Position numbers and translations under genes: made by a program. 64,000 nucleotides of DNA from Heteronotia binoei (Eukaryota). The stretch's first letter is position 1, and each line of letters starts with the position of its first letter. The notes beneath the pieces are model-generated. The model was given only the letters and a program-made list of their open reading frames with translations. It had not been told where the DNA came from and did not search any database. The stretch covers positions 176,576,001 through 176,640,000 of the forward strand of contig NC_083243.1 in assembly GCF_032191835.1 (NCBI RefSeq), in the 5' to 3' direction. This document shows, one piece after another, positions 1 through 62,860 of the stretch.

Positions 1-519
1 CTCTGCACTGGCTTCCAATAATATACCGGGTCCGGTACAAGGTGCTGGTCATTACCTTTAAAGCCCTATATGGCCTGGGACCTGCCTACCTGAAGGACCG
101 TCTCTCCCCACACGTTCCCCAGAGAGTACTGAGGTCTGGGACGCAAAACCTTCTCACCATCCCCGGGCCCAAAGAAGTCCGTCTCAAGACAACCAGAGAC
201 AGGGCCTTTTCTACAATGGCCCCCACATGGTGGAACCAGCTGCCGGAAGAGGTGAGGGCCCTGCGGGATCTTACTCAGTTCCGCAGGGCCTGTAAGACAA
301 GCCTCTTCTGGCTAGCCTACGCCTGACTAGATTAATGTAGCTTATCAGACTTTAGTGAAATATACGGTATAGTTTTAATGTTAAGATTTTAAGGTTTTTA
401 AATGTTTTGACTTTTTAATTGTAACAATTTTGCACTTTGTTTATTGTTTTATCGTTTGTTGTGAGCCGCCCTGAGCCATTTTATGGGAAGGGCGGGATAT
501 AAGTCATAGAATGAATGAA

Positions 520-574
<55 letters not shown>
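1..574 (+). mobile_element. L2-clade LINE 3' end (RT C-terminus, 3'UTR and (AAAT)n tail)
   Basis: ORF 42-326 (HWLP..KVLVITFKALYGLGPAYLKDRL..APTWWNQLP) is a typical L2 ORF2 C-terminus. Terminal motif gagccgccctgag...gggcgggatataa is followed by a tetranucleotide tail. Confidence 0.85.
509..574. repeat. (GAAT)/(AAAT)n microsatellite (L2 tail)
   Basis: About 16 direct tetramer copies visible. Confidence 0.95.
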
Positions 575-1224
575 GTGGATAGAGGCTCTGAGAATTCTCT
601 TAGAGATCTCTAGGCTCCTCACAATTTCTTCAGAAAGACGGAACAAGTAAATCAGCTTTACACTTGTGAGGTACTATCCCAAAAGAGGTGTGTCAGATTC
701 ATACGTTACTGTTAACTGTGCACAGGTAAAGACCGTTTTATTTTGGTTAGGCTTACAGAATTGCTTAAAAGAACACTGGCTGAGTCTAAATTGTTAATGT
801 TACTTTTTAGCCAATTCTGTTCAGTTGTTGACTGTTCATTGTTTTAACGATTCAGTTTTCTTTTCTTTGGTTGTGTGTGGGTGCGTCCGCGCCTGGAAGC
901 CATGGCGACTTCTGGCGACTGACCCCTACTGGGCGCCTGGAGGATATTCAGAGAGGTGGCTGAATAAAGCCTGCCCTCACCTCCCATCTCTGATATTCAA
1001 AGCAGGTCTCCCACCCAAGTACTCGCCAGAGCTGATCCTGCTTAGCTACCGAGATCTGACAAGATCAGGCTTGTCCGAGTTACCCAGGTCAGGACTTGAT
1101 GGTTCAGTTTTGATTGTCAGATTTTAGAATCAAAGATTTCAGGTTTTCATGGCTGGCAACATCATTAGGGTTTGTAGAATCTTTCGGGCTCAAGTGCCGT
1201 GTTCTACTGGAGAGAGTTTTTCTT

Positions 1225-1265
1225 CCAGACGTTTCGTTCTCAGCTGCGGAGAATATCCTCAGTGG
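1225..1265 (-). ncRNA. Minimal type I hammerhead ribozyme motif (left arm; sense to NHEJ1 pre-mRNA)
   Basis: Minus strand: CCA-CTGAGGA-T-ATTCTC-cgcagct-GAGAAC-GAAA-CGTC-TGG. Core intact; A.C mismatch at the base of stem II. Confidence 0.6.
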
Positions 1266-1436
1266 CGTTGCAGCCGGAGCAGGCTCTCTGACCTTCTTGG
1301 CTGCTGTGCATTGAGTGAGGCCAGGGCTGCTCTCAACACACCCCCTCCAGCCTAGAAATAGCAGCTCTCCAGCAGCCCTGGCCTCACTCAATGCACAGCA
1401 GCCAAGAAGGTCAGAGCGCCTGCTCCGGCTGCAACG

Positions 1437-1477
1437 CCACTGAGGAAGTTCTCCGCAGCTGAGAATGAAACGTCTGG
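1437..1477 (+). ncRNA. Minimal type I hammerhead ribozyme motif (right arm)
   Basis: CCA(1437-39)-CTGAGGA(1440-46)-A-GTTCTC-cgcagct-GAGAAT-GAAA(1467-70)-CGTC-TGG(1475-77). Predicted cut after C1474. Confidence 0.65.
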
Positions 1478-2076
1478 AAGAAAAACTCTCTCCAGTAGAA
1501 CACGGCACTTGAGCCCAAAAGATTCTACAAACCCTAAAGATTTTAAAATGTTTTGATTTTAGACTGTTTGCAACCTGCTTTGCAGACCTATGAACCCAAG
1601 AGAAAATAAGATGTACATATAGTAACAAAAATAATTAAAATATGCTCTGAGTTCTCACTTAGATTCCATGCTTATTCAACCTCTAGGACACAATCATCCA
1701 AGCTTAATGTCAACCAAAGCTTTAACTTTGCACACAATAACTCATTTAGTTTACTCATCACATCATAAGACATATTGCCCAGTTCCCTGCTAAATGAACC
1801 ATGCTGGCCTATAATTAACCACAACCACGTTCACTGCAGTTCAGTGTTTACTGGTATCAATACTAAACAAATACTGCTACATAAAAAGACAACAATTGGA
1901 AGGGAAAAGCAAAGGCTGGGAGAAATAAAGTACCCCATTTTTTTTACAACCCGTTATAATGAGAAGCACCAACCAACTAGAGTTCACAATAGCCTGCATT
2001 ATTTTGTGCCAGAATCAGAGAAGCAGACCTTTTGTCCAACACGTGCATACCAAATAAGAACAATAAGTTCTCCTAC

Positions 2077-2135
2077 CTTGTCCTCAAATCTCTGCAGAAA
2101 GGATTCTTCCTTGAAAGGTTCTGTTTTCAGACGTT
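2077..2135 (-). CDS. NHEJ1: XLF/Cernunnos coding exon 4 (59 nt; E-RLKTEPFKEESFLQRFEDK)
   Basis: ttgcag acceptor and AAG/gtagga donor. Matches human RLKTEPFEENSFLEQF; phase 1 to 0. Confidence 0.93.
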
Positions 2136-2582
2136 CTGCAAGGGAAGCGACAAGACGACTGACGTGAGCAAGGCTCTGATTTGGGCAGAGGCGCAAGCTT
2201 CCTCCCAGGGTTCTTGTTCTGACCCTACCCATGCCACGCTGATAGCTGAATCCTTGACACAATGACAAAAAGCCTACCTCCAAGAACCTTCCCAGCAAAG
2301 GAGTGATTGATGAACTCCTGAAGATTAGCCAGCCACTCACCCAAGTCAAGCCCACAAAGTACTAGATCACAGTTCCCCAGTCACAGGTACTGTCCAGGGT
2401 TGCTATCAGTAACCATAAGGGCATGGCACAACACAAAATCCATTGCATATAACAAATCCAATGCACATAGTGTTAAACCTGGCTCCTAAGAGACTAGTGT
2501 TCAAGTTCCAATTGCTGACTCCCTGAGTGGTCTGAGAAACCCACTTCCAGCCCAATCTCTGTGTCACATATAGGACAACCTA

Positions 2583-3180
2583 TACCGTTGTCACCTGCAA
2601 TTCCTTGAGCGCTTTCATCAGCGCTGCCTTCACACCATCCTCAACATCCACTGGAGTGACTTTGTGACCAACACTGAAGTCCTCAAGAGGGCGGAGGTTA
2701 CAAGCATCGAGGCACTGCTGTTGAAGACGCAGCTGCGCTGGGCAGGGCATATTTCTAGGATGGAAAACCACCGCCTTCCCAAGATTGCTCTGTATGGCGA
2801 ACTTTCCACCAGCCATCGAAATAGAGGGGCACCAAAGAAGAGGTACAAGGACTCCTTGAAGAAATCCCTTGGCACCTGTCGCATCAACCATCACCAGTGG
2901 TCTGACCTAGCCTCAGATCGCAAAGCATGGAGGCACACCATCCACCAGGCTGTCTCTTCCTTTGAGAACGCACGCATAGCTGGTCTTGAGGACAAAAGGA
3001 GATTGAGGAAGAATCGCACTGCTACAGCACCAACCCCAAATCAGACTTTTCCCTGCAGCCGCTGTGGCCGGACCTGCCTGCCCCGCATTGGTCCTGTCAG
3101 CCACCAGCGAGCCTGCAGCAGACGTGGACTACTGCACCCTTCTTAAATCTTCATTCGCGAAGCCAAGCCGAGAGAGAGAC
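2583..3180 (+). mobile_element. 5'-truncated RTE-clade LINE with 11-bp TSD
   Basis: ORF LERFHQRCL..QLRWAGHISRMENHRLPKIALYGEL..CSRCGRTC is an RTE C-terminus. TSD aggacaaccta at 2572-2582 and 3181-3191. Confidence 0.9.
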
Positions 3181-3892
3181 AGGACAACCTACTACACTGG
3201 ACTGCTGTGAGGAGGTAACAGCTGTTTCTTGTCCTGTTACACAAATCACTACAATTAAACTTCCAAGAAGTGAAAAAAAATTTTTTTCACCCAGCTGCTG
3301 GGCACAGGCACTATAAATCCAGTGGTCCCACCCAGGATGACTGAGGACAACTGAATCACCATGGCATGTTTATCCCTTCTGAGAAAGAACAGCTTGTACA
3401 TGAGAGCAATCCCCTGTCGATATAGTTCAGGAATACCTGGCTCCGCTTGGGTTTGTCACTTCACACCAAAACAGAACTGGACTAAGAGAAGTGACATAAC
3501 AGACGCGTACCACTACTTTAATGTTTTCAGCGATCAATAATGGAAATCAGTGTGCACATAGATTTGTCTGGAGAAGCAATGCCTCTTGATTGTGGAGGGA
3601 AGGATATTAGATTTTGTCCCCAAGAATCGTTAAGAACGGAAACTAGAAGTCTGAACCATATTTCCCTGACCAAAAACAAAGACACCCCAAAGAAGCAACT
3701 TAGCTAGAAGAGTATAACCCTGAAAATGTATAAACGACAGGGAATCCGACACAGGCCCTCTGCTTACAAGTTAGTTTATTGATTCTTATCCCTTACCAGA
3801 CAGTCTCAAATGGAAGCCAGTGATGATCATGTAATTCCATTTGACAGTCAGCAGCTACTTACAGGTCTATACAGACAACAAACGGGAACAGC

Positions 3893-4497
3893 AAGAAGAA
3901 GAAGATATTGGATTTATATCCCGCCCTCCACTCCGAAGAGTCTCAGAGCGGTTCACAATCTCCTTTACCTTCCTCCCCCACAACAGACACCCTGTGAGGT
4001 GGGTGGGGCTGGAGAGGGCTCTCACAGCAGCTGCTCTTTCAAGGACAGAGGCTCAGAGCGGCCTACAATCTCCTTTCCCTTCCTCCCCCACAACAGACAC
4101 CCTGTGAGGTGGGTGGGGCTGGAAAGGGCTCTCACAGCAGCTGCCTTTTCAAGGACAGAGACTCAGAGCGGCCTACAATCTCCTTTCCCTTCCTCCCCCA
4201 CAACAGACACCCTGTGAGGTAGAAGAAGATATTGGATTTATATCCCACCCTCCACTCCGAAGAGTCTCAAAGCGGTTCACAATCTCCTTTCCCTTCCTCC
4301 CCCACAACAGACACCCTGTGAGGTGGGTGGGGCTGGAGAGGGCTCTCACAGCAGCTGCCCTTTCAAGGACAACCTCTGCCAGAGATATGGCCGACTCAAG
4401 GCCATCCCAGCAGCTGCAAGTGGAGGAGTGGGGAATCAAACCCGGTTCTCCCAGATAAGAGTCCGCACACTTCACCACTACACCAAACTGGCTCTCC
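3893..4497 (-). mobile_element. Squam3-like tRNA SINE with internal 110-bp tandem units and a duplicated tail
   Basis: Head GGTGTAGTGGT..GGTTTGATTCC with L2-like tail and (TCT)n. Unit starts at 3957/4067/4177; tail restarts at 4221. Confidence 0.85.
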
Positions 4498-5232
4498 TGC
4501 ATCTGCTCAAGGAGACTGGGCAGACAGCTCAAGGAGACTGCAACCAGCATCTGCTCAAGGATACTGGGCAGGACACAGGCTGTACCAGCTGAGAAGCCCT
4601 AGGAGACTTTCCACACTAATGGGTTAGGGAAGGGAGGTATCCCACAGAACCATATCATAGCTATTCTTTGTGGATGAGATGAAGACAGGGTGGCTATGAC
4701 TCTCCTAGGAACGCTGCTTTCAGAGAACTAAACCCTGATCCCAGCATCGCTGACATACCCAGTTCCTACCTGAATGGCCTGGACCTTTCTATTCTCTGGG
4801 CCGTAGCAGCCGGGAGTGACACCCACCAGACATCGCTACTATTGCACATCCACAAGTAGCAAACATACGGGCTTGGCTGCAATGCTGGGAGGGGTAAGTC
4901 AAAGGAACCCACAATTGTTCTTCCTCCACCTAAGAAAGAACAGCCCGACTCCGCTCAGGTTCCTTTACTAACCGACACAGTGCCAGCCTCCTGGATCCCA
5001 GCCACACATTCAGAGAAAAGGGTGGACTTTGGCTGTCCTCCGTGGATTTCAGCTACTGGTCAGTGTCCAGCTTTTTCCATCCTTAGGGCACTGACCCCAA
5101 AGCTTCTAGTAACTGGTTTGCAGCCGCTGCAAAGACACAGCTGGGTAATGGCCAAAAGCTGCCACGCTGAGCAAGGGAGGAAGGAAGTCTGCGTTCCAAA
5201 GCAGTCCGGAGTGCAGGTAGCACCCTCCTCAC

Positions 5233-5371
5233 CTCGACTTAAAGCAGCCCCGCTCTCCTGGTAGTCTTCAATCTCGGCGTCCTTCCGGAGCAGCAAGGAT
5301 GCCAACTCCTGCACCTGACTCTGCAATGCCAGGCTCATCGCCATCAGGGGTCGCACGAGGTGGCGGGATAT
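5233..5371 (-). CDS. NHEJ1: XLF coding exon 3 (139 nt; [46 protein letters not shown])
   Basis: taacag acceptor and G/gtgagg donor. Matches human [24 protein letters not shown]. Confidence 0.95.
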
Positions 5372-5434
5372 CTGTTACAGGGCACAGAGGCGAGAGCAAC
5401 AGTTACGCAGCGACAGGGGGAGGTCCAGTGCAAA

Positions 5435-5814: not shown

Positions 5815-6144
5815 TATGAACATATGAATCAGACCCTCGGTCCATCAAAGTCAGTATTGTCTACTCAGACTGGCAGCGGCTCTCCAGGGCCTCAAGCTGA
5901 GGTTTTTCACACCTATTTGCCTGGACCCTTTTTTGGAGATGCCAGGGATTGAACCTGGGACCTTCTGCTTCCCAAGCAGATGCTCTACCAATGAGCCACC
6001 GTCCCTCCCCTGCTCTCCAGGGTCTCAAGCTGAGGTTTCTCACACCTATTTGCCTGGACCCTTTTTTGGAGATGCTGGGGATTGAACCTGGGACCTTCTG
6101 CTTCCCAAGCAGATGTTCTATCCACTGAGCCATCGTCCCTCCCC
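5815..6144 (-). mobile_element. tRNA-headed SINE, two-head form (133-bp period)
   Basis: Two tandem GGGGAGGGA.GGTGGCTCA..GGTTCAATCC heads, then the tail ending catatgttcatatg. Confidence 0.85.
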
Positions 6145-7228
6145 TATCACTTTAATCAGGCCTGAAAATAAAAAGAGCCCTGCTGGATCAGACCAGTAGT
6201 CTTTTTTCTTATCTAAAATTAAGGGCTACTTGCATATAAGACAGAGATCTCAAAGGGATATACCTTATCAGGGGTCGTTTTGTAGGGGAAAAGGTGGTGG
6301 AGTTCATTCAGGGATTGTTATACAGCTGCACCTACTATTCAATGGACAAGGTGGGAAGGAGGAGGTGGAACTGTCAGAAAGGTTCAGGAGCTGTGCTCCT
6401 GTGAGCTCCCACTGAATTCAAAGCCTGTACCTTATACATATATCAATAACTTTCCTAGGCAACTTCCTCCCCCATGAGCCATGACAACAATAGATGGAGA
6501 TGCTGCGTAGTTTGCTCTGTAGTAGCAAAAAGCCTGGCTTATCTGGTACTTTCGCACACACAACAACGCGCTTTCAATCCATTTTCAATACACTTTGCAA
6601 CTGGATTTTACCCTGTGAAACAACAAAATCCATTTAGAGATTATCACTAAAGTATACTGAAAGTGCTTTATTCGATGTGTGTGAAAGTGTTCAGGAAGCT
6701 ACTGGTACATGCACCAGAGTAAGTTAGCACCCATGCTATATTTGACATCTATGGGGAAATGCCACATAACGCACATGCAAGAACTAAAGTATAAACCCAT
6801 CAACTCCAAAATTCTAGTGTCTTTTTAAAGGGACCCTAACCCCAGAGTACTGCCTTATTGCAAAAAAAAACCAAAACCTTCAGGCTTTGCACAGCTGTAA
6901 CTTTAAAAGTGTGTGTGTGTGTGTGTGTATAATGCCAGCAATAATTGAACTCAGTAACACACCAAATAATTACAAGCCAAAGAAGAATATCACCTGGGTA
7001 TGCAGTGCCCCCTGCTGCACACATGGCAAAACTGCAACCAATTAATCAAAACTTCAAGTTGAATAGCATCATCCTTGTATCTAGACTAAAACTGTCCTTA
7101 GACATTGGAGAGTTCACATAGAGTCGAATGTGGTGAGTATCAGTTATGCATTTCTGATTGCCAGATATATTAAGCAAGGAGGCAAGCAAAATTAATGCAG
7201 AACAAGAGAAAGGCAATCAGCAACAGAT

Positions 7229-10773: not shown

Positions 10774-11249
10774 GAACATATGAACATATGAAGCTGCCTT
10801 ATACTGAATCAGTCCATCAAAGTCAGTATTGTCTTCTTAGACTGGCAGCAGCTCTCCAGGGTCTCAAGCTGAGGTTTTTCACACCTATTTGCCTGGACCC
10901 TTTTTTGGAAATGCCAGGGATTGAACCTGGGACCTTCTGCTTCCCAAGCAGATGCTCTACCACTGAGCCACCATCCCTCCCCTGCTCTCCAGGGTCTCAA
11001 GCTGAGGTTTTTCACACCTATTTGCCTGGACCCTTTTTTTGGAGATGCCAGGGATTGAACCTGGGACCTTCTGCTTCCCAAGCAGATGCTCTACCACTAA
11101 GCCACCATCCCTCCCCTGCTCTCCAGGGTCTCAAGCTGAGGTTTTTCACACCTATTTGCCTGGACCCTTTTTTGGAGATGCCAGGAATTGAACCTGGGAC
11201 CTTCTGCTTCCCAAGCAGATGCTCTACCACTGAGCCACCGTCCCTCCCC
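10774..11249 (-). mobile_element. tRNA-headed SINE, three-head form
   Basis: Unit starts at 10851/10984/11118 (133-134 bp); single tail. Confidence 0.88.
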
Positions 11250-11794
11250 AATTAATTTATTTAAAGTGACATCCCAAGGATAAAAAACAGTTTATAAAAA
11301 GAAAGAAAACTAATATATGTACAGACTGTATATATTCTCAAATGGAAAGAACTGTCCGAACACTTAAAATACAATGGCATGTACCTGGGAACATGCAATA
11401 CATTCTTTGGTAAGCACAATCATTTTTCTAATAATTACTGATTAGAATTTGGTAGTGTACATTATTAATGGGTATGGATTATAACAAGTGCTGATTAACC
11501 ATACAGCTCCCTCACCCAGACACTGGTCACATTCTATGCCAATACATTTAAAAAAAAAAAAATGCTAGCAGGAGTAAAGGAAGCTTTTACTAATAGTTGG
11601 AGGCTATCCCTTAAAAAAGAGAGCACCTAAGTTGCAGACCTGCAGTATGCCTACAGAACAGGGAAACTGCCGATCAAGAATTCCTTTTCTCAATAGAACT
11701 GTCGTGTCAGTATTTTATTTTAAGCTTGAACTAACAGGGCAGCTGCTGAGGTAGGTACAAGCACGTGTGTATTGTGTAACTATTCTTTACTCAC

Positions 11795-11980
11795 CTTTGA
11801 CCGCTGTTGTATGATCTGAGTGTCTGTCCTTTCATACCACATGTGGTGGAGGTCACAGAGGAGCAAGGCATAGCCAGCATCTCCAAAATAAGCCTTGGCC
11901 AGCAGTGTGGACTCAGCAAAGCAAACGGAAGCCCAGGGTTGCAGAAGGAGTCTTGTTTCCATGTCCTCACTGTACTCCAT
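11795..11980 (-). CDS. NHEJ1: XLF first coding exon (MEYSEDMETRLLLQPW..QQRSK)
   Basis: ttgcag acceptor 1 nt before the ATG; AAG/gtgagt donor. Matches human MEELEQGLLMQPWAW..GYALL..SQRAK. Confidence 0.95.
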
Positions 11981-17840: not shown

Positions 17841-18028
17841 TGTTGTAGATGCTCCGGGCTGTGTGGCGGTGCCGTTTTGCCAGCAACTGTGACTGGCATC
17901 CTCAGAGATGTAACCCAGAAAACTGTTTTCTGGGTTACACCTCTGAGGATGCCAGTCACAGTTGCTGGCAAAACGTCAGGTCTCACAATGCCAAGACCAC
18001 AGCCACACAGCCCGGAAAATCTACAATA
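17841..18028. mobile_element. Second Penelope-like palindrome with degenerate hammerhead cores
   Basis: Hairpin centred on t17924; 54-bp arms 17870-17978 with 2 mismatches, then an outer arm after an indel. Plus strand CCT-CTGAGGA-T-GCCAG..CTGGC-AAAA-CGTC-AGG (17940-17980). Confidence 0.7.
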
Positions 18029-18103
18029 ATAAATGGACTCAGGCTGTGAAAGCCTTCGACAACATAATCTAATGCACCTTTACTTGGAAGCAAGTTCCTC
18101 TGA

Positions 18104-25319: not shown

Positions 25320-25532
25320 ATTCATATGAAGCTGCCTTATACTGAATCAGACCCTCGGTCCATCAAAGTCAGTATTGTCTACTCAGACTGGCAGCGGCTC
25401 TCCAGGTTCTCAAGCTGAGGTTTTTCACACCTACTTGCCTGGACCCTTTTTTAGTTGGAGATGCCAGGGATTGAACCTGGGACCTTCTGCTTCCCAAGCA
25501 GATGCTCTACCACTGAGCCACCGTCCCTCTCC
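25320..25532 (-). mobile_element. tRNA-headed SINE, single-head form
   Basis: Same family as the 5815, 10774 and 62406 copies; one head. Confidence 0.85.
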
Positions 25533-62405: not shown

Positions 62406-62860
62406 GGGGGAGGGACGGTGGCTCAGCGGTAGAGCATCTACTTGGGAAGCAGAAGGTCCCAGGTTCAATCCCTGGCATCTCCAAAAAAGGGTCCAGGCAA
62501 ATAGGTGTGAAAAACCTCCACTTGAGACCCTGGAGAGCAGGAGAGGGATGGTGGCTCAGTGGCAGAGCATCTGCTTGGGAAGTAGAAGGTCCCAGGTTCA
62601 ATCCCTGGCATCTCCAAAAAAGGGTCCAGGCAAATAGGTGTGAAAAACCTCAGCTTGAGACCCTGGAGAGCAGGGGAGGGATGGTGGCTCAGTGGCAGAG
62701 CATCTGCTTGGGAAGTAGAAGGTCCCAGGTTCAATCCCTGGCATCTCCAAAAAAGGGTCCAGGCAAATAGGTGTGAAAAACCTCAGCTTGAGACCCTGGA
62801 GAGCCGCTGCCAGTCTGAGAAGATAGTACTGACTTTGATGGACCAAGGGTCTGATTCAGT
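62406..62860 (+). mobile_element. tRNA-headed SINE, three-head form, nested in CR1
   Basis: Heads at about 62406/62540/62673; tail runs into the gap. Confidence 0.88.

Follow-up and report, generated by a model that had tools for sequence, protein, structure and literature searches.

A Penelope-like insertion, almost certainly dead, with two minimal hammerhead motifs in an NHEJ1 intron of Heteronotia binoei

Identity of the insertion

The window analysed here is a stretch of 64,000 nucleotides of Heteronotia binoei DNA (contig NC_083243.1, positions 176,576,001 to 176,640,000), in which exons of the gene NHEJ1 lie on the minus strand. An intron of this gene contains two mirror-image hammerhead motifs within an insertion at 1129-1537. 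This is almost certainly a single dead insertion of a young and very abundant Penelope-like element (PLE) of the Penelope/Poseidon clade, composed of two truncated copies, each with a minimal hammerhead. The original prediction, made from the DNA letters, had taken a palindrome at this place for the footprint of such an element, and that identification is right. The element is of a known kind, the insertion is a routine, decayed one, and the motif is already in the literature, including that on a close lizard relative. The significance beyond annotation is small: the genome carries a very successful recent PLE family of the Poseidon type, with at least 7,000 intact hammerhead motifs.

Architecture of the insertion

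Automated repeat detection placed the two arms of an inverted repeat at 1158-1331 and 1371-1544 (174 nt, 96% complementary, with 39 nt between them). A direct count on 1165-1331 against 1371-1537 gave 167 nt with exactly five mismatches, at 1185/1517, 1236/1466, 1254/1448, 1255/1447 and 1285/1417. The predicted palindrome, a 167-bp inverted repeat with five mismatches and 39 nt between its arms, is therefore present as described, but the 39 nt are not a spacer and the element is larger than the repeat. The nucleotides at 1332-1370 are a further 5' extension of the right-hand copy, seen as family sequence in longer copies (...CACACCCCCTCCAGCCTAGAAATAGCAGCTCTCC). The whole insertion covers 1129-1537 and consists of two 5'-truncated copies of one retroelement, arranged head to head with their 3' ends outward (Table 1). 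An unoccupied target site would be expected to read AGATTTTA[GA]A.

Table 1. Coordinates of the insertion, of its hammerhead motifs, of a longer family copy and of the NHEJ1 exons (window positions unless marked L059)
Feature	Position	Strand	Remarks
Left target-site duplication	1119-1128		AGATTTTAGA; pairs with AGATTTTAAA, 9/10 identical
Left copy	1129-1331	-	3'-terminal 203 nt of the retroelement, 5'-truncated, sense to NHEJ1; from BLAST against 30 genomic loci and junction comparison
Tail	1129-1165	-	37 nt past the ...ACAAACCCTAA end, left copy only; from comparison of inverted pairs
Left minimal hammerhead	1225-1265	-	CCA / CUGAGGA / U / AUUCUC-loop-GAGAAC / GAAACGUC / UGG
Right copy	1332-1537	+	3'-terminal 206 nt of the same retroelement, without tail; takes in 1332-1370
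Right minimal hammerhead	1437-1477	+	CCA / CUGAGGA / A / GUUCUC-loop-GAGAAU / GAAACGUC / UGG
Right target-site duplication	1538-1547		AGATTTTAAA; flanks right copy
L059 upstream partial arm copy (pLTR)	3323-3499 (L059)		direct copy flanking the open frame
L059 open frame, 810 codons	start ATG at 3408 (L059)		contains YVDD and FRKPTHTDRYL
L059 downstream arm copy (pLTR)	6051-6255 (L059)		direct copy flanking the open frame
NHEJ1 exon encoding ERLKTEPFKEESFLQRFEDK	2077-2135	-	59 nt; AG acceptor, GT donor
NHEJ1 coiled-coil exon	5237-5374	-	Pfam XLF_CC, 57.5 bits, E 3.8e-12
NHEJ1 N-terminal head exon	11768-11938	-	Pfam XLF, positions 1-59; 40.2 bits, above curated cut-off

Copies of the family in the genome

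Junctions and boundaries were compared at 30 genomic loci, 96-98% identical to the arm, sampled from at least 2,649 first-look candidates. The outer end ...CTACAAACCCTAA is common to all copies compared. One end of each inverted pair continues for 35-37 nt (TGATGTTACCAGCCGTGAAAACCTGAAATCTTTGAT) and the opposite end stops; this one-sided tail was seen in all 14 of the cleanly resolved inverted pairs sampled. A minus/plus pair with variable inner truncation points occupies 17 of the 30 loci. The head-to-head junction point differs in every locus, the sequence between the arms is a continuation of one or both of them, and its length ranges from 22 to 1,107 nt. Direct duplications of 10-12 bp, their length varying by locus, lie just outside the element ends at L003, L005, L006, L008, L029 and L038 (for example ATTCAAGGCAGT in L003, AAAGCCAGTATA in L008 and GAAGCTCTGGCT in L029). 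Solo 5'-truncated copies with target duplications of their own also occur, L038 among them. Toward the 5' end of the element the number of candidates falls from 2,649 to 612 and then to 165, a thinning that 5' truncation predicts.

The intact 35-nt family motif has 7,120 exact matches in the genome (3,539 forward and 3,581 reverse), compared with none for a reversed control. Many of these matches form minus/plus pairs 60-150 nt apart, 15 such pairs being found among the first 100 matches. The recorded hallmarks of PLE insertion are strong 5' truncation, partial tandems that form pseudo-long terminal repeats (pLTRs), an adjoining inverted 5'-truncated copy, a 30-40-bp tail at one end only, and hammerheads in the pLTRs (Craig et al., PMC8557442). 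All of them are seen in the family and the window insertion. A 'hammerhead palindrome' can thus be recognized as a routine PLE insertion by its one-sided tail, its 10-12-bp duplication and a spacer that is the continuation of the longer arm.

The termini TAGGG...CCCTA and the near-perfect palindrome would also suit a hAT-like miniature inverted-repeat transposable element (MITE) with long terminal inverted repeats, in which the hammerhead-like strings had arisen by chance. An element of the hAT type has an 8-bp duplication, symmetric short terminal inverted repeats and no coding parent. The original prediction had named genomic copies with 8-bp duplications as the outcome that would speak against a PLE. 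The copies have instead duplications of 10-12 bp, variable in length, together with variable truncation points and asymmetric ends with a one-sided tail of 30-40 nt. Moreover, the inner ends form a truncation series of a 2.75-kb element coding for a reverse transcriptase (RT) and an endonuclease, and solo copies such as L038 have their own duplications. Chance likewise fails as an explanation of the motif, for which shuffled sequences give an expectation of 0.00 and which is homologous to an experimentally studied hammerhead. Next to no credence is left for a MITE.

An equally slight chance is given to an animal retrozyme, that is, a small non-autonomous tandem repeat with hammerheads that spreads via circular RNA. 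Retrozymes derive from PLE sequences and possess the same type I hammerheads (PMC5680766; bioRxiv 10.64898/2026.07.22.740005). The locus, however, has no head-to-tail tandem or direct repeat, its motifs are on opposite strands, and it aligns colinearly with the 3' terminus of an autonomous element. The RNA reads sampled showed neither back-splice nor circular joints.

Two of the sampled loci, L005 (G000:C32:197898-201067) and L007 (C1:136813428-136816597), contain the same PLE pair with identical flanks and 871 internal nt that are 100% identical. Either the region was segmentally duplicated, or an unplaced contig repeats part of C1.

The parent element

When longer copies were tracked in the 5' direction, they led to an open reading frame (ORF) with the RT motifs YVDDVF, LAFLDVLI and VFRKPTHTDRYL, followed by a motif of the GIY-YIG type, GVYKIPCSCGAVYIGTTQRS...EH (GVYKIPCxCGAVYIGTT...EH). 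Locus L059, in the same genome as the window, has the layout pLTR-ORF-pLTR with a unit of ~2.75 kb. Its frame matches Pfam RVT_1 with 38.1 bits against a cut-off of 29.6, and its matches among PDB sequences are weak and confined to group II intron-like RTs. The endonuclease region of L059 is 62% identical over 90 amino acids (E 1e-40) to that of Poseidon_Ac (PAc), the Anolis carolinensis element (Frangieh et al., Mob DNA 2024, PMC11167929), the reference for which was the consensus ORF text in File S1 of that paper. The GIY-YIG activity of PAc was demonstrated by mutagenesis (PMC11167929), and it is by homology to its ORF that the family is assigned a GIY-YIG endonuclease. A BLAST search with the arm, the longer copies and L059 thus supplied what the original prediction had proposed to look for, a parent with RT and GIY-YIG parts.

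In L059, A9, the bulged U and G10.1 of the hammerhead together make up the start codon of the ORF. Counting from the A of this ATG, C17 is nucleotide 29, which places it 26 nt after the codon; both points agree exactly with those published for PAc (PMC11167929). The original prediction had correctly noted one extra base next to the CTGAGGA box, but had overlooked its role: this base and G10.1 complete the start codon. The tail is also explained by L059, where it joins the upstream pLTR to the body of the ORF; in a full unit these nucleotides come next after the pLTR and lead on into the ORF.

Three further copies, L033 (2553-2570), L039 and L042, are all 5'-truncated. Their predicted ORF stays open for about 110 codons beyond the endonuclease, through an internally repetitive stretch rich in Q, N and P, and stops at a UGA within the CUGA box of the hammerhead, 2 nt ahead of the AUG of the next unit (A9-U-G10.1). 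The frame of L059 stops earlier, just past ...LQNTL. The ribozyme core of the element therefore also supplies its start codon and, in some copies, its stop codon, an arrangement shared with the biochemically studied Anolis element.

The family and PAc have several properties in common. Besides the pLTR-ORF-pLTR layout and the similar endonuclease, they share an ORF start codon at the beginning of hammerhead helix II, a cut site 26 nt after that codon, a tail of 30-40 nt marking alternative 3' ends, and a visibly homologous 3' part of the pLTR (...AGCCCGAAAGA..ACAA..CCCT.. and CTCTACGGGGAG). They are nevertheless separate families. Helix II has been fully replaced by compensatory changes, being GUUCUC/GAGAAC in the window family and GCCUGC/GUGGGC in PAc, and the tail sequences are unlike each other. 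The ends of the window family lie ~92 and 128 nt after the ATG, compared with 111-118 nt for a PAc start site. Furthermore, the published biochemistry is that of PAc.

The hammerhead motifs

Both arms have the layout CUGAGGA-N-helix II-GAAACGUC, flanked by CCA/TGG. The left motif, CTGAGGATATTCTCCGCAGCTGAGAACGAAACGTC at 1228-1262 on the minus strand, is divided as CTGAGGA-T-ATTCTC-CGCAGCT-GAGAAC-GAAACGTC; the right motif, CTGAGGAAGTTCTCCGCAGCTGAGAATGAAACGTC at 1440-1474 on the plus strand, as CTGAGGA-A-GTTCTC-CGCAGCT-GAGAAT-GAAACGTC. The pattern CTGANGA-N14-26-GAAACGTC has two matches in the window compared with 0.00 expected from 100 shuffles, and both arms match it, which bears out the two mirror-image hammerhead layouts originally proposed. 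Cleavage would be expected after C1474 in the right motif and, in the left one, after the C complementary to g1228.

The core boxes C3-A9 (CUGANGA), G12-A14 with A15.1 (GAAA), U16.1 and an H17 other than G are present in both arms. The unpaired base between 9 and 10.1 is U in the family and in the left arm, and A in the right arm. A palindromic ACGU (15.2-16.2) precedes C17 in both arms, so that a helix III formed by dimerization is predicted from the sequence. In the family the motif has a 3-bp helix I, CUGAGGA, one bulged U, a 6-bp helix II, GAAA, the palindromic ACGU and C17. Conservation of the core across copies, on which the original prediction depended, is evident from the 7,120 exact copies of the motif. 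Among 67 copies, which were picked for similarity to the window arm and are young, non-CpG sites diverge by 0.4% in the core and by 1.4% elsewhere.

Additional support for the hammerhead structure comes from a different Poseidon family, represented in the window by a second insertion (17841-18066). Of the nine pairs in helices I and II, five differ between the two families in both partners, and four of these five belong to helix II. With the structure fixed by the hammerhead model over the two lineages, 95.5% of the helix I/II cells are paired, compared with 24-49% in shifted registers. PAc, compared by eye from File S1, has a third version of helix II with the same geometry of 6 bp and a 7-nt loop.

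The motif agrees with the minimal hammerhead ribozymes (min-HHRs) of metazoan PLEs, which have been reported in reptiles (Cervera & de la Pena, Mol Biol Evol 2014, PMC4209133). Common to both are a short helix I, a long helix II, a single unpaired base between 9 and 10.1, the pair G10.1-C11.1 (in the family majority), the lack of an own helix III and a palindromic 15.2-16.2 (ACGU) available for pairing in dimers. Min-HHRs also occur in thousands of copies per genome, mostly in truncated elements, with pairs on opposite strands 100-700 bp apart. There is no difference in kind; the window copies have point changes at 10.1, 11.1 and the bulge. By its layout the family is assigned to the min-HHRs, and the two window copies are degraded members.

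Some results weigh against the identification of a hammerhead-bearing PLE. The Rfam search suggested in the original prediction gave no match to any of the hammerhead families tried (Hammerhead_1, _3, HH9, HH10 and II), whether the whole window was searched with the gathering threshold or the 501 nt of 1100-1600 with E<=10. Free-energy folding of 61-nt segments from the family majority and from both arms failed to give the hammerhead fold for monomers and dimers alike; the helix II strands favour pairing in trans or with upstream sequence. On the protein side, Pfam at E<=10 has no GIY-YIG match in the ORF of L059, and the PAc text in the paper supplement was the sole PLE reference sequence compared. 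The Rfam result is to be expected, because the models carry a helix III hairpin and the minimal motif has no intramolecular helix III. The want of an own helix III makes the folding result expected too, and it does not count as evidence against the motif. The only Rfam matches at the insertion are spurious ones to miRNA precursors, caused by the long hairpin.

The second insertion, at 17841-18066, is also a head-to-head PLE insertion and has the same architecture. Its tail (...GTGAAAGCCTTCGACAACA) is closely like that of Anolis Poseidon_Ac, and its target duplication is ATAATCTAAT. Both of its arms have G12>A in the core, with AAAAC in place of GAAAC.

State of the two window copies

The left arm differs from the family majority at 1214, 1254 and 1285, and the right arm at 1447, 1466, 1488 and 1517. 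Of these, 1214 and 1488 occupy mirror positions and represent one shared variant. The change at 1254 in the left arm is G10.1>A, which creates an A.C mismatch and turns the ATG of the ORF start into ATA. In the right arm, the change at 1447 replaces the bulged U by A, so that ATG becomes AAG, and that at 1466 is C11.1>U, a CpG transition that leaves a G.U wobble. The pair G10.1-C11.1, kept in the family majority, is thus broken in both window copies. The differing stem II changes of the two arms had been read correctly in the original prediction: A10.1.C11.1 on the left and G10.1.U11.1 on the right, where the family majority has G-C.

RNA data were taken from two raw-read runs, about 6% of each being read, and two contig sets. 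Reads from other copies have the family base at 1254 in ~100% of cases, T at 1447 in 100% and C at 1466 in ~90%. Because these reads carry the majority base at all three positions, both window motifs are judged to be degraded. Judged from their letters, they are relics, both lacking the AUG as well as the G10.1-C11.1 pair, and the insertion appears dead.

Behaviour in the NHEJ1 pre-mRNA

The RNA of the minus strand over 1129-1547 is predicted to fold into a near-perfect hairpin with an energy of -358.9 kcal/mol (z -36); none of 100 shuffled sequences folded as well. In the NHEJ1 pre-mRNA, pairing of the arms into this long hairpin would be overwhelmingly favoured over the ribozyme. Transcription reaches the antisense arm before the sense arm, so that the sense hammerhead would be caught in this pairing on emerging.

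It had been proposed that the sense copy might cleave itself within the NHEJ1 pre-mRNA. This is very unlikely, because the hairpin would capture the sense arm, the arm has G10.1>A, the transcript holds no second sense copy and the ribozyme of the relative depends on a protein. The hammerhead of PAc, the closest relative studied, cleaves only with the element protein, and RNA-seq ends are absent at its site (PMC11167929).

The strongest form of this proposal would make the left hammerhead a working intronic ribozyme, comparable to the amniote hammerheads HH9 and HH10. It has the sense of NHEJ1 and lies 538 nt beyond one of the gene's splice donors, all of its core boxes are present, and like Rfam Hammerhead_HH9 and HH10 it is a type I core inside an intron of a protein-coding gene. 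HH9 and HH10, however, are single-copy, ultraconserved and equipped with their own helix III, whereas the window motif is a recent repeat copy with an antisense twin, no helix III and no Rfam match. G10.1>A destroys the most conserved pair of helix II, helix III would need a second sense copy, and the motif is one among thousands of neutral copies. A working intronic ribozyme is thus highly improbable. It is hardly more to be expected that protein from active PLE copies helps the sense hammerhead to nick the host pre-mRNA.

In the RNA data sampled, not a single read covers the unique flanks, 993-1116 and 1551-1800. Of the reads placed on the element, 64-84% continue into unlike sequence and are for this reason attributed to other copies. 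Neither the starts nor the ends of these reads, which are family RNA reads and not locus-specific, accumulate anywhere, 1474/1475 and 1228/1227 included. Every base difference in them is explained by other family copies. The family is therefore represented in the RNA libraries, and the reads say nothing on transcription, editing or cleavage at the window locus.

The predicted hairpin of ~170-200 bp might matter in another way, as long double-stranded RNA (dsRNA) in the intron: the arms would pair, ADAR would edit them, and splicing of the nearby exon, whose donor is 538 nt away, may be affected. Such a side effect is compatible with the locus being a dead PLE insertion. It is nevertheless unlikely, given the zero depth on the unique flanks, base differences that are all accounted for by reads from other copies, and the existence of thousands of such pairs from which the window pair is not distinguished. 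That a 170-200-bp dsRNA in the NHEJ1 pre-mRNA is edited by ADAR, or measurably alters NHEJ1 splicing in the host species, is less probable still.

A sequence resembling 5S rRNA adjoins the insertion at 979-1096 on the minus strand. It scores 39.5 bits with Rfam 5S_rRNA, just over the gathering score, and is probably a 5S-derived short interspersed nuclear element (SINE). Positions 920-976 beside it have very deep coverage with loose ends in one RNA run and are therefore taken for another expressed repeat.

Proposed mechanism of insertion

The mechanism proposed here for the origin of the PLE insertion is drawn from the published properties of PAc. The PAc protein cuts and extends both DNA strands, and it begins reverse transcription at two internal sites, set apart by a distance that corresponds to the tail (PMC11167929). 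Because of these two properties, dual priming with a head-to-head outcome is suggested for the window family. The GIY-YIG endonuclease of the element would cut the two DNA strands ~10 bp apart, and each 3' end would prime reverse transcription on element RNA. Priming at the downstream start site would produce the copy with the 37-nt tail, and priming at the upstream start site the copy ending in ...CCCTAA. The two cDNAs would meet head to head after about 200 nt each, leaving two 5'-truncated copies with their 3' ends outward and a target duplication on both flanks.

The result resembles the twin-priming inversions of LINE-1, in which two opposite cDNA segments also lie in one insertion with one target duplication. 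An inverted L1, however, is one copy broken into two successive pieces, of which the 5' one is turned round, whereas the window arms are the same 3'-terminal segment. The PLE enzyme differs as well, being a GIY-YIG endonuclease that cuts and extends both strands (PMC11167929).

NHEJ1 and other features of the region

The location of the insertion in an NHEJ1 intron, with the minus-strand copy in the sense of the gene, agrees with the original prediction. XLF exons lie on the minus strand, the exon encoding ERLKTEPFKEESFLQRFEDK has splice sites at both ends, and the insertion starts 538 nt downstream of the donor of that exon, its left arm being sense to NHEJ1. No C-terminal GLFS-type motif was found on the minus strand of window positions 1-5240.

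The exon at 2077-2135 is the counterpart of the human NHEJ1 exon ending at c.588. The intron would then also correspond to that holding IHH enhancers in mammals, as had been proposed. In human, the IHH enhancer variant c.588+18131 falls within the intron that directly follows the c.588 exon (PMC10425348). Exons for the hedgehog signalling domain are located at G000:C21:176381451-176394634 on the minus strand, ~182 kb beyond the window and on the strand of NHEJ1. This hedgehog gene is, by synteny, presumably IHH.

Two near-identical hedgehog loci are found on C10 (19129602-19139114 and 19370937-19380453), 240 kb apart; the pair probably reflects either a recent segmental duplication or a duplicate in the assembly. 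The window also contains tRNA-like units with broken acceptor stems (Rfam tRNA, 30-63 bits) at 10906-11244 (-), 5934-6139 (-), 62412-62749 (+) and 25456-25527 (-). They form short tandem arrays with a spacing of 133-134 bp, one of them ~500 nt from the first NHEJ1 coding exon, and look like a tRNA-derived SINE in tandem.

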